Of a DNA stretch of 64,000 bases, positions 31,264-39,950 are shown piece after piece; within the stretch, counting starts at the first letter, position 1, and each line of letters starts with the position of its first letter. The DNA is taken from positions 36,394,001 through 36,458,000 of the forward strand of contig NC_088803.1 of assembly GCF_011386835.1 (NCBI RefSeq), read 5' to 3'. Under the pieces are notes generated by a model that had not been told where the DNA came from, did not search any database, and was given only the letters and a program-made list of their open reading frames with translations. This DNA is from Chrysemys picta bellii (lineage: Eukaryota). Made by a program: the position numbers and the translations under genes.

Positions 31264-31966
31264 TCAAGTGTACATCATTTCTGCCATGTGGGACATTTTC
31301 TTGGGAATATATAAGTAATATTCCATGTATCCTGAAAGATCTTCAATTGTCACATCGTCCACGAAGGCTCGAGCTTGCTCAGAACAAGATCGGGGAGAAC
31401 CTGATGAAGCCATACCAGAGGGCGATTTGTTCTGCAGAGACTGGGAATGGACTTCTAGCACTGCCTTTTCACATTCTGACAGGACGCTCCGTAAGCCAGA
31501 AAAAGAGTACACTTCCATGTCTTGCCACTGTCTGCACTGGCATTCCTTGCCCTCGCAAGGACACTGCTTGCTATCGCTGAGCACAGATAATGACTGGAAA
31601 TCTGAAGGCTGGCTAGAATCCAGGTTGGTTTCAAAGGACGAAGAAACAGCAGCAGAATTCTCTCTTGAATTCTCCAAAGGCTGTTCAATTGTGGAAGCTC
31701 CCAAAGGTTCATTTCTGGCTCTTCTGCAATCACTGGCATCAAAGCAGGAATCATACTTGTCCCCTGTACACGGTCCTTCTGCAACACAAATGTCTGAGCT
31801 GATATTACTCTTTGAAGTGTCTGGCTGGCTTTTGTGTTTCAACTGGCTGCGGGCAGAAGATGCTTTCATACTGCAGTAGGTAAACTTGGGAGGATGCAGG
31901 ACAGGAGACTTGGAACGCCTGCGACGCTGGGTTCTTGATGACCCCCTGGAGGGCTTCCTCACACAC
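31264..31966 (-). CDS. OSER1 paralog, last coding exon (703 nt)
   Basis: cactaacag|G TGT GTG AGG AAG: same acceptor position and phase as OSER1 exon 4. Open frame [26 protein letters not shown]...[10 protein letters not shown]...[31 protein letters not shown]; 43 of the last 44 aa are identical to OSER1. Confidence 0.95.
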
Positions 31967-33009
31967 CTGTTAGTGAACAAAATATGAACAATTAGGTTAC
32001 TCAGAACTCAATTCCGGAGCCTAATGCTTTCCAAAACAGGACCTCACGTACAGCAAGACAGTGTCAAGTATCCGACCTGAATGATGATTATCTGTACAGC
32101 TACAGAAAAACCCAGCACGCCACTGGTATCTGAATACCCTCAGGAGACTAAATCACAGAAGAGAATTGACAAGAGATATTCAGAATGCACATTCACAATA
32201 GCTACAAATGCCAGTGTTTTGGTGATTAAACTCTTGTGTGTTTAAATAAAAGGGAATGGGGAGAGAGAACTGACCTTCCTTCCACCCTAGATTATGCTGG
32301 AAGCAGAAGAAAGTGGGAGAACAGGATCTAGAGAGTATTGTAAGAAGGATTGTGAGGGAGCTGATACCCCAGAGGAAGGATGCTTTCCTGCTGTAAGATT
32401 GTTTTTGTAACTGAACACACCAAGCTGAGGAGGTTTTGAAGTTGCTGTTGAGGGAAGCAGCAACAGACTCAGGAGAAAGGAACTGATGCTGGGTTTTATT
32501 TCATTTATATTGAATTACAAAATGATCATCCAGGACACGTAAGGATCTGGGTGGAAGAAAGGAGCGGAAAGGACTGAGATGACAATTGTCACAGATACTG
32601 ATACTCAGGAGGATGTAATTGATATGATGACAGAAGAGGAGTTGATATGGAATATTGTTATAAATACTGTAGGAGCAGAAATGTATTGATATGTAACCTC
32701 GTTATTGAGAGAGTATAAACTTTTACTGGGGTAGTGGAATGTTTATTGCACACCATAATGCTTGGCTTCAATAGGGGCTGTAGGAAAAACAAACAGGGAA
32801 GCAAAACAATGGCTTCCCAGATAAGAACATCTAGGTACATACTTGAACGACAATGAGCCATGGTGTTAGGATCAGGGATCCTGTCTCCTCTGTTTTCATC
32901 AAGTTGCAAACCTCCCAGATCAAAGGGCTACAAACAGTTAGGGAGTATTTTGATTCGTGGGAAGATGGAGAGGGTTGTCTCTGGTCAGCATCTGTCTAAG
33001 GAGACAAGC

Positions 33010-33435
33010 TGTCACGGACAGGCTCTGTGGAGGAGTCTGAAGGAACTGGTCCTTCCCAGATCTAAGAAGTGGTAAGCCTTAAGGGGCACAGCTAGATATA
33101 CGTACAGTCTGTCCTATATTTTTTAAGATCTGTTTTCTATGAAATGCTTTTGTGCTAAATAACTAATACTTTGCTTTAAGGAGGCTGTTTGGTCACTGCT
33201 TACCTCTGTCATTGCCCCAGAGGGAACAGAATTCCAGGGTCTGAAAATATATCAGATCTGCTGAGGTAATCAGTTAGTACCAGGGGACTGATACCTGAAG
33301 CCTGGTCTGAGAATGGAAGAATCACACAGTTCGACTCAGAGCCAGGTAGCAGCTAGATAACTGAGAGCTGAAGGATGATATTACTCAAAAACATCAGGAG
33401 TGATCAGAGGTGCAGTTAGCCCAGTAACTGTGACA
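33010..33435 (+). mobile_element. Possible solo LTR in paralog intron 3
   Basis: TGTCAC...TGTGACA termini and LTR-like content; no matching TSD found. Confidence 0.35.
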
Positions 33436-33689
33436 CATATAGATAGATACCAGTATCTCTTGAAGGGAGACAATCAAACAGGATTTGCTTCAAGGGTTTG
33501 TTAAAAGGCTATTAAAAAGAATCAAGATGAACTCTAAGTTAAGGTTTCTATAAACAAAAAAGGGGGAAATAATATGGCTCAGCTGCTTAATTAAACAAGC
33601 AATCCCTGTCTGAAATGATGTTATGCATGTTTTCATCATCTCTAATTAACAAGGCATAAATATACAGTTCAGTTAACAATGTGTTTTAC

Positions 33690-33800
33690 CCATGCCAAGT
33701 CTCTTTGGCACAGACAGGTTGAGGTTTGGTTCCATCCATAGCTGTTCTTATCGGTGCTCTCAGACTCGTTCCCTCATCCACAGACAGAGATGCGGTAGAT
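33690..33800 (-). CDS. OSER1 paralog, middle coding exon (111 nt)
   Basis: ctctcactcag|A TCT ACC...CAT GG|gtaaaa; translates [37 protein letters not shown]; 24/38 identical to OSER1 exon 3 with one codon deleted. Absent from the ORF track. Confidence 0.95.
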
Positions 33801-37007: not shown

Positions 37008-37538
37008 CAGTGGTTCCCAAACTTTTTACTCAGGTGACCCACCAACTGCATTTAGTCTTTTTTTGCAACTGACTCAGGGGTCATATTTGGGGGGAGGAGG
37101 GGCAAAATGGGAGGCCTCCTCACCCTGCTGGGGGGCACCAACCACCCACACCAGCACCCTCTGCCTTGGCCCCACAACCCGAATCTTAGCCTAGTGTGGA
37201 GGAGAGGCTTGGGGGAAGGAGGTTGGAGAGCAAGCCCACCCTGCACTCACATACCAGTAGATGCTCCTGACAGTTACCCACTCTGGGTGTTGTGATCTGG
37301 TGCATAGGATTGCGGTGCCATTCAGGTTTGGCCAAGCCACCCCCGAGTAGCAATGCAACGCAACCCCAAACATTAGGTCACAATCCCTGGAGCAAGGAAC
37401 TGGGCCCAGCCCTGAGAGAGTTTTGGGGTGAGTGCAGGGTGGGCTCACTTTCCAACCCTCCACCTACGAATCTCCCCTCTGCACCAGGTTCACAACCCAT
37501 TTAGAACTTTGTTGGGACTCACCATTTGGGAAACACTG
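37008..37538. mobile_element. hAT-type MITE (531 bp)
   Basis: TIR CAGTGGTTCCCAAA / TTTGGGAAACACTG; perfect 8-bp TSD CTCTATGT (37000-37007, 37539-37546). Confidence 0.93.
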
Positions 37539-38873
37539 CTCTATGTGCATCATAGGCTGCAAAGTGAAACTTACAAATTGCTTGGGTACATTTCCCTCTG
37601 CTGTTCATAGTGCACATACAGAACTGGCTAAATGGCAAAAAGACATGCAGGAAAAAGGAGAGACAACAAATCAGGGTGGAAGTAGAAAGACAAAGTTAGT
37701 CACCTCAGAGCTGAACCAGGACAAAAATGCCTCAGTTGTACTCTCTGCTTATAAATTCCTGGCTTGGAGCAAGGTGCTGCCACTCTCTTTCTGCCCTGAT
37801 TTAACAGCATCCCAAAGGCTATTTAAGCCTTTTAAAGGTGTGCAATGTACCTTCAGATCTGGACTAGACAGGAAGGTAGGCGACAACAACTTGACACTTT
37901 CTGTAGTGAAAACTCAACTATTTCAATTTAATAAGCAATTGTAAATATATTACATTTAACAGATACAATAAAACCTTGCATGCCATACAATGCTAACGAC
38001 CATGCTTTTTGGACAGCTGCGCTGTCCTTCAGCTTGTCATCCCCAATGTATTCAAGGGGAGTGTTCTCAGCATGTGCACCTGTTGTGTTGCTGGGTTTCC
38101 ATTGTATCTATCTAGGTTTTTTACAGTTTAATCACCATGGTATCTGAGCACCATCATATCATGTTGTATATATCTGCAAAGTAGAAAGGTGTGATAAAAA
38201 TATTCATAGCCAAATAGAAAATAACACAATGTGAAGTGTGATTCTTCTCTAAACGATAACTCTATAAAATGCCATTTTCTTACCCTATAGATCTGTGTGT
38301 ATTCAGTCATGCTTAGTTTTCTATCAAAAACACATTTTTATTACTGTTTACTTCAGTTAGCTCTGTGCAGCTCTGGGAGAGGAAAAGAGATCCTATTCTG
38401 GGAGCTCCTGCATCAACAAATTGTTAACCACATTGCTCAATTTCTGTCCTCAGGGTATGTAAAACCATGAAAGACAACTCAAGGTAATGATGCTACACTG
38501 ATGCCTGTGAAGGCATAATTTAATCTCCATAACCTGCAATTTGATTTGACTCAGTCCTGGATGAGTTTGTGGCACTGGCACGCAGGAAACATCCACCCCA
38601 ACACTCACGTTACAAGTACAAAAGGCCACACTTGACTAGGAGTCATTGAAACACAAACATCGAGTCCCACAATGACTCTTCCACACAGCCTTCTCTGAAA
38701 AGTGTGATTTTATTTCCCACCCACCTACACATACGCGTTTTGTTTCAAATTTGACTCAGGCCTTGCTACACAGAAAAGTGGTACTGCTTTAACAAAGCCA
38801 GGATAGATAAAGCAGTACAATCCTCACAGTTATATCAGTACAAACGTGCTTACAGTGGTGTGGTATAAGCTTA

Positions 38874-39124
38874 GGGCTTGTCTACACTGGCACTTTACAG
38901 CGCTGCAACTTTCTTGCTCAGGAATGTGAAAAAACACCGCCCTGAGCACTGCAAGTTTCAGCGCTGTAGAGTGCCAGTGTAGACAGTGCACCAGTACTGG
39001 GAGCGCCCCTCATGGAGATGTTCTTTTTAGAGTGCTGGGAGAGCTCTCTACCAGTACTGGTGCCGCAAGCCACGTTAAAGCGTTGCAACAGCAGCGCTTT
39101 AACGTTGCCAGTGAAGACATGCCC
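38874..39124. mobile_element. PIF/Harbinger-type MITE
   Basis: TIR GGGCTTGTCTACACTGGCA / TGCCAGTGAAGACATGCCC; TSD imperfect. Confidence 0.75.
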
Positions 39125-39891
39125 CAAGTCACACATATGAAGGGGAATAACCTGTATCGGTATAAGGTAACATTATACTGGCATAGCTGTGTCTACACTA
39201 GGGCTTGTACCCACATAATTATTTTCATGAAAAACTAGAGCCCTGGCCGAGGGTTACACTGCAAAACCCCTGTGTGTAGCTCAAGCCTCACTTGCACAGA
39301 CCCTTCGATCCTGGCCCGGTGCTGCATGAAGAGCAGCAGCTCCCCGCGCCCCTTGTTCTCTACATTTGTCTCTCCTTGCGCTGGAGAGGAATGAGCCGCA
39401 CAACCCGCAAAGGGGCCTGGCTCGGGAGGGGGCGATGCCAGAGCGCGGGTGGGCACAGAGCGCGCTGCTGCCAGGTTCACTGGGCGAACCGAAGGGCAGA
39501 GCAGCTCTCCGAGGCAGGGGGCGGCCGCCGTTTAGCGGTGTGCCTACAGCGCCGAGCACACGGGGACCAGGGCCCTGGCTTGGCCAATACAAGCAGGCCA
39601 GATGAGCTGTGGACGCTCCCTGCCGCCCGCAGCCGAGGGGGCACCGTTCCCTGACCCCTCCTCCTCACGCGTGCGATGCTTGCCCGCTGGGAGACCCTGA
39701 GCGGCAGCAGCAGAGCTCAGGCGGGCTCCCCTCACAGCCAGCGCGGCCCTATGCCCCGGACGAGACCCCGCCGGGTCACCTCCGGGCCTTCCGGGGTTGC
39801 GCGGCCCCGATCCTTCTTCCACGAGAAGGGGCATGGAGACCGGGGAGGGGGGAAGCAAGACAGGCCCTCCCCGCCCAGCTGCGTCACTCAC

Positions 39892-39950
39892 CAGAGGGCC
39901 TCCAACTCGCTCGCCGAAAGGGGATAAAAACAACAGGAACTGACGTAAGC
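39892..39950 (-). other. Putative non-coding exon 1 of the OSER1 paralog (TSS approximate)
   Basis: Strong donor CTG|GTGAGT at 39892/39891; Inr-like TCAGTT about 50 nt upstream on the minus strand; no ATG in the exon. Confidence 0.55.

Follow-up and report, generated by a model that had tools for sequence, protein, structure and literature searches.

An ancient, constrained paralogue of OSER1 lies head-to-head with OSER1 in turtles and other sauropsids

What is the second copy of OSER1 that lies beside the first in the turtle Chrysemys picta bellii: a decaying or spurious duplicate, an adaptation of its lineage, or an old gene that other lineages have lost? We took up this question in a window of 64,000 nucleotides (nt) of that genome (assembly GCF_011386835.1, contig NC_088803.1, positions 36,394,001 to 36,458,000); all coordinates below refer to this window, position 1 being its first letter. 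OSER1 has been reported, in silkworm and human, to be nuclear, induced by H2O2 and FOXO-regulated (PMC11336091), and to extend lifespan in invertebrates (PMC11336091). A first-pass annotation of the window had proposed an intact second OSER1 gene of 296 amino acids (aa), with three minus-strand exons and GT-AG introns, placed head-to-head with OSER1. It held that the copy arose by an old inverted duplication of DNA and is under purifying selection, and that the pair forms an oxidative-stress module in a long-lived, stress-tolerant lineage. Our analysis bears out the gene, its antiquity and its constraint, and leads away from the last proposal: OSER1-like is an ordinary, ancient and retained paralogue of moderate comparative interest.

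A second DUF776 gene beside OSER1

On the minus strand, the coding segments 34537-34461, 33800-33690 and 31966-31264 join into 891 nt that encode 296 codons and a TGA stop in an uninterrupted frame. The two coding introns are of the GT-AG type, with donors GTAAGT and GTAAAA and an AG before exons 2 and 3. The protein matches the Pfam family DUF776 (PF05604) at E = 6.8e-65 and 219 bits (cut-off 25) over profile positions 1-176 of 180, and the whole Chrysemys assembly contains exactly two DUF776 genes, OSER1 and OSER1-like. With reading frame, splice sites, phases and domain match verified, the gene stands as first described. Its ATG exon (34461..34582) begins after a TTTTTCAG acceptor with 45 nt of 5' untranslated region (UTR), followed by the ATG at 34537 and the coding part, 34537-34461. 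Exon 2 (33690..33800) is 111 nt long with phase 2 on both sides, a length shared by the homologous exon in birds and in Carettochelys. Exon 3 (31264..31966), delimited by the joined open reading frame (ORF), the AG acceptor and the invariant alignment columns, supplies 233 codons and the TGA, and carries an RRRRSKSP box, a CxCx4CxC-W motif and the 44 invariant residues of the C-terminus. The poly(A) signals lie on the same strand at 31016..31113: the two AATAAA signals noticed earlier are there, at 31113-31108 and 31021-31016, along with an ATTAAA at 31060. The two AATAAA fall 151 and 243 nt past the stop, from which a short 3' UTR is to be expected.

The 34582 acceptor and the exons upstream of it, all on the minus strand, were placed by mapping the extended N-termini of database isoforms. 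An alternative 5' exon at 36534..36695, present in RefSeq isoform X9 and in one Gopherus isoform, is probably 5' UTR, because the upstream ORF that it carries in frame lacks conservation beyond close turtle relatives. Farther out, the N-terminus of a Gopherus isoform maps to 39327-39292 and is followed by GT, which provides a candidate donor (39292, then GTGAGG) for the non-coding exon 1 that had been suspected in the CpG island. We give this candidate exon as 39292..39950, where the upper limit is the first-pass estimate. The 5' intron also holds, at 35700-36270, a block of GC-rich (0.65-0.71), CpG-poor (observed/expected about 0.2) degenerate repeats of about 45-60 bp (ggctcctgcc...ggggctgc...cccc), on which Tandem Repeats Finder made no call.

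The window protein matches residues 71-366 of RefSeq OSER1-like isoform X9 of Chrysemys picta bellii at 100% identity. The guess that automated annotation might already list the gene as OSER1-like was correct, as isoforms X1-X9 are recorded for this species and XP_005304711.2 represents the same gene. The RefSeq models differ from ours in carrying extra, non-conserved N-terminal extensions. Because these come from alternative 5' exons and vary between turtle genera, we place the conserved start at the methionine of MDSEDK; the exact 296-aa form beginning there was absent from the protein collection searched for Chrysemys picta bellii. Relatives at 64-93% identity occur in cryptodire and pleurodire turtles, tuatara, gharial, squamates and dozens of birds, from palaeognaths to passerines, and in many birds the OSER1 and OSER1-like proteins are encoded on one contig. 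Being annotated in so many sauropsid groups, the gene is neither unannotated nor turtle-specific. Its naming is inconsistent: databases list the turtle and bird genes as OSER1-like but give the orthologue in Anolis, Pogona and Varanus simply as OSER1. No mammalian protein of the OSER1-like clade appeared among the matches of our protein database searches. A literature search for OSER1-like or an OSER1 paralogue, including a turtle or chicken duplication, found no paper describing it, and the published OSER1 phylogeny is without sauropsids, its authors making no mention of a paralogue (PMC11336091). The gene, though annotated in many genomes, appears uncharacterised.

Comparison of the two turtle paralogues shows how they are related. 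The N-terminal 26 aa are identical at 22 positions and the last 44 at 43, exactly as first claimed, and identity over exon 3 is 55%. At the DNA level only coding exon 1 (88%) and exon 3 (68%) match, and no similarity was found between the introns of the two loci. Their synonymous divergence (dS) is 1.17, and the C-terminal 44 codons contain one nonsynonymous change, while 11 of about 26 synonymous sites differ. Given this dS and so many synonymous differences, the shared termini reflect purifying selection on the protein rather than gene conversion or mis-assembly. Gene conversion is rejected by the 0.42-0.84 of synonymous sites that differ in those blocks, and an assembly duplicate by the dS and the unalignable introns. 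A processed retrocopy is ruled out by two coding introns at the parental positions, by introns in the 5' UTR and by the adjacency of the parent gene. The inference of an inverted duplication at the DNA level therefore holds.

Constraint, transcription and age

To obtain coding sequences, we mapped database proteins onto their genomic loci by exact spliced alignment, and then estimated the ratio of nonsynonymous to synonymous divergence (dN/dS) by the Nei-Gojobori method. The dN/dS of OSER1-like is 0.19 for Chrysemys-Carettochelys, 0.16 for Alectura-Fregetta and 0.19 for Chrysemys-Alectura, against 0.34, 0.31 and 0.22 for canonical OSER1; for Anolis-Hemicordylus and Chrysemys-Anolis the OSER1-like values are 0.15 and 0.20. 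Overall, the five pairs place OSER1-like at about 0.15-0.22 and canonical OSER1 ranges over about 0.21-0.34, so that constraint on OSER1-like is equal to or stronger than that on its better-known neighbour. In both genes the two ends are the most constrained (omega 0.05-0.22), and the Ser-rich middle less so (0.20-0.48). All 23 OSER1-like sequences sampled have an intact ORF, which together with these ratios rules out a pseudogene.

The locus is also transcribed. In fourteen small sequencing runs (100-230 million letters each, from five studies under two species labels), 57-95% of the words sampled from 31264-34537 are present, and runs from the same studies contain at most 10% of the adjacent unique intergenic stretch at 26300-30500 (4.2 kb). 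In genome-sized runs the figure is 90-96% for each of the two stretches. Because the small runs nearly lack the intergenic stretch and the genome-sized runs contain it along with the gene body, the former behave as transcriptomes whose coverage of the gene body extends to its introns. For the Pogona orthologue, a 1066-nt Logan contig contains a complete 294-aa ORF that aligns to the genome in three blocks, and since the introns have been removed at the homologous junctions, it represents a spliced mRNA.

To place the duplication, we built a maximum-likelihood tree of 73 proteins under LG+C20+F+G4, rooted on cartilaginous fishes. Sauropsid OSER1-like proteins form a clade with support 100/100, whose inner branching follows the species tree: lepidosaurs, then turtles with gharial plus birds. 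Mammals and sauropsid canonical OSER1 form another clade (100/99), to which amphibians are sister (88/72), and OSER1-like is in turn the sister group of this whole assemblage, with the coelacanth branching outside. The turtle OSER1-like protein thus does not group with mammalian OSER1, whereas the plus-strand copy of the window belongs to the clade that includes the mammals. The duplication is older than the split between mammals and sauropsids, a lower bound that agrees with the old age first suggested, and it possibly preceded crown tetrapods. Because it predates that split and the clade contains no mammalian protein, the simplest reading is that mammals lost OSER1-like.

Competing histories

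Taken together, these results make it highly probable that OSER1-like is a functional OSER1 paralogue, produced by an inverted tandem DNA duplication before mammals and sauropsids diverged, kept under purifying selection in all sampled sauropsid lineages and lost in mammals. A shallower history would confine the duplication to sauropsids, so that mammals never had OSER1-like and a fast-evolving new copy was drawn outside the amniote OSER1 clade by a long-branch artefact. Its attraction lies in the long stem branch of OSER1-like (0.22) and in the lack of any second-copy relic within 10 kb upstream of platypus OSER1, a search equally negative at Xenopus oser1 and over a range too short to decide the matter. 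Yet the clade that such a history requires, with sauropsid canonical OSER1 and OSER1-like forced together, lowers the log-likelihood by 39 units and fails the approximately unbiased (AU) test (p = 0.021), and it would break the strongly supported grouping of mammals with sauropsid canonical OSER1. Nor does OSER1-like look like the fast copy. Coelacanth OSER1 is 56-59% identical to it and 50-52% identical to bird canonical OSER1. In addition, OSER1-like has the same residues as fish at sites 92, 93 and 222, positions at which every canonical amniote protein carries a common derived residue. Both observations mark it as the more conservative of the two. We consider a sauropsid-only origin improbable.

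The first-pass suggestion that the pair is a two-gene oxidative-stress module, evolved or specially retained in a long-lived, anoxia-tolerant lineage, fares worse still, and we give it very little credence. Turtles do keep both genes intact and under constraint, and the reported FOXO regulation and lifespan effects of OSER1 in invertebrates (PMC11336091) lend the idea some appeal. However, two birds have the same head-to-head pair, gharial, tuatara and lizards have orthologues of OSER1-like, and the dN/dS of OSER1-like in turtles is no different from that in birds or lizards. Nor are FOXO motifs enriched in the window, which also speaks against the module. Because short-lived birds carry the gene in the same position and other sauropsids share it, a reading in terms of longevity or of turtles is unsupported; mammals, which lack a copy that predates their split from sauropsids, are the unusual lineage. 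Least credible of all is a non-functional, decaying or artefactual duplicate with a fortuitous open frame. The variable N-terminal extensions of the RefSeq models do look non-coding, but an ORF that is intact in every sequence sampled, across lineages that split before the amniote radiation, and dN/dS well below one refute this notion in practice. The divergence between the paralogues, the signal in transcriptome-like runs and the spliced Pogona mRNA also speak against it.

Several points nonetheless weigh against the history that we favor, an ancient duplication followed by mammalian loss, and against the reading of the locus that goes with it. The AU rejection is a moderate one (p = 0.02), and with so long a stem branch a model artefact is conceivable. 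As to amphibians, their placement has support of 88/72, and an amniote-stem duplication that leaves them out is not rejected (AU p = 0.40), so that the duplication may or may not predate them. The RNA nature of the small runs is guessed only, and the evidence for splicing comes from Pogona rather than from the turtle gene itself. The bidirectional promoter between the two genes is putative, deduced from exon-1 donors that lie within one CpG island. Finally, the FOXO core motif GTAAACA occurs 9 times in the window against 8.1 expected, which is no enrichment, and is absent from the CpG island, so we make no FOXO claim for the locus.

Squamates may add a further twist to this history. All 11 squamate proteins retrieved fall in the OSER1-like clade, including those named plain OSER1, and a search of the 10 kb that precede the OSER1-like ATG detected no canonical OSER1 exon in Anolis, Hemicordylus or Pogona. 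This check has little power, because it gives the same negative outcome in gharial, where canonical OSER1 is present, and because the two ATGs of turtles lie 9.3-11.7 kb apart. No match to the first exon of a JPH2-like gene, the neighbor of turtle OSER1, was found beside squamate OSER1-like within the range searched. We advance as a hypothesis that squamates lost canonical OSER1. Hidden paralogy with reciprocal loss, in which mammals keep only canonical OSER1, squamates perhaps only OSER1-like, and turtles, crocodilians, birds and tuatara both, is a tentative extension that we find somewhat easier to doubt than to accept. If true, the 'OSER1' of lizards and snakes would not be orthologous to the human longevity-associated gene, and sauropsids would offer a natural two-gene system under one bidirectional promoter for studying how OSER1 function is partitioned.

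The locus, its likely function and related systems

Canonical OSER1 occupies the plus strand, with its ATG at 43799 and its stop at 51568, and encodes 294 aa in coding exons of 77, 114 and 694 nt with the same phases as in OSER1-like. Its exon 1, a 5' UTR exon at 40076..40231 with a donor GT at 40232, is where the N-terminus of the Chelydra OSER1 model maps. The ATG exon (43760..43875, coding from 43799-43875), coding exon 2 (49123..49236, 114 nt) and coding exon 3 (50875..51568, including the TGA) follow. A 132-N assembly gap interrupts intron 1 at 47106-47237. The two genes stand head-to-head across a single CpG island at about 39250..41000 (GC 0.67-0.72; CpG observed/expected 0.6-0.9, up to 0.91), within which the exon-1 donors of OSER1-like (39292) and OSER1 (40231) are 940 bp apart. 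The core of the island (39941-40078) contains TGACGTAA at 39941 and GCGCATGCG palindromes at 39976 and 40070, which we take to be CRE-like and NRF1-like sites, respectively, of the kind typical of bidirectional promoters. Because both genes diverge from it, the island is probably a shared bidirectional promoter that drives both, and this arrangement suggests some co-regulation.

The order of neighboring genes is conserved as well. Downstream of OSER1-like, on the minus strand, lies a GST-domain gene resembling GDAP1L1 (367 aa in relatives, with Pfam GST_N/GST_C), whose first coding exon is at 23885..24067 and further exons at 16169-15942 and 12626-12384. Downstream of OSER1, on the plus strand, a MORN-repeat gene resembling JPH2 has its first coding exon at 57891..58283. 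Alectura and Fregetta show the order OSER1(-), OSER1-like(+), 367-aa GST-domain gene(+), with 3.2-4.8 kb between the ATGs of the two paralogues. The same GST-domain gene lies beyond OSER1-like in Anolis, Hemicordylus and Carettochelys, and Carettochelys, like the window, has the MORN-repeat gene beyond OSER1. The protein encoded by the first JPH2-like exon is 100% identical over 131 aa between Chrysemys and Carettochelys. These flanking genes fit GDAP1L1 and JPH2, which we take to lie on either side of human OSER1 in an equivalent orientation; the slot of OSER1-like would then correspond to the human OSER1-GDAP1L1 interval. The window also includes a repeat of about 200 bp at 25940-26155 that resembles a short interspersed nuclear element and has thousands of copies in the genome at 88-94% identity (6539 first-look candidates).

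What the second protein does can be approached through its motifs. In an alignment of 43 sequences, 68 columns do not vary in either paralogue, from sharks through to turtles, and the window protein conforms at every one. They form four clusters: an N-terminal LQxAFKKLxVD, the basic RRRRSKSP box, CxCx4CxC followed by W, and a C-terminal block ending in MAEMMYT. The third of these, four cysteines and a tryptophan, occupies residues 198-210 of the window protein, and its cysteine cluster could be a metal-binding or redox-sensitive motif. AlphaFold2, given 43 aligned sequences, returned short helices only and no confident fold for OSER1-like, with a mean predicted local distance difference test score of 47, and no relative was found by sequence in the PDB. 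OSER1-like is thus predicted to be an intrinsically disordered, motif-driven DUF776 protein; as it retains every linear motif conserved across the family, we infer for it the same molecular activity as OSER1, and by extension a nuclear role in oxidative stress. The two genes would be driven from the one CpG-island promoter, and dosage or a partition of expression would be the simplest explanation for the retention of both.

OSER1 has lately been put forward as a conserved pro-longevity gene under FOXO control, and a second constrained copy in birds and reptiles bears on that picture. It affects the assignment of orthology, the reading of expression studies of chicken or reptile "OSER1", and comparative-longevity arguments drawn from OSER1 copy number. 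What is new here is a pre-amniote date coupled with mammalian loss, a second copy at least as constrained as the first, the conserved head-to-head architecture and the inconsistency in naming. This is a modest point of evolutionary genomics, which brings no new mechanism and no support for a stress adaptation specific to turtles.

The closest known system is canonical OSER1 itself (C20orf111 / Perit1, DUF776). OSER1-like resembles it in having three coding exons of identical phase and about 295 aa, in keeping all family-invariant motifs, in its predicted disorder, and in sharing its locus and CpG island; the exon layout (about 77, 111-114 and 690-700 nt, with conserved phases) is common to turtle, bird, lizard, platypus and Xenopus genes. 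It differs in belonging to a separate orthology group outside the clade of mammalian and sauropsid OSER1, in its diagnostic residues Q53, C64, T92, Y93, R222 and S223, in an exon 2 that is 3 nt shorter, and in having changed less since the duplication, and it is so far known from sequence. The pair also invites comparison with head-to-head paralogues that share a bidirectional CpG-island promoter, which it matches in its inverted orientation and in donors 940 bp apart within one island; here the likeness is one of architecture alone, with the shared regulation putative.

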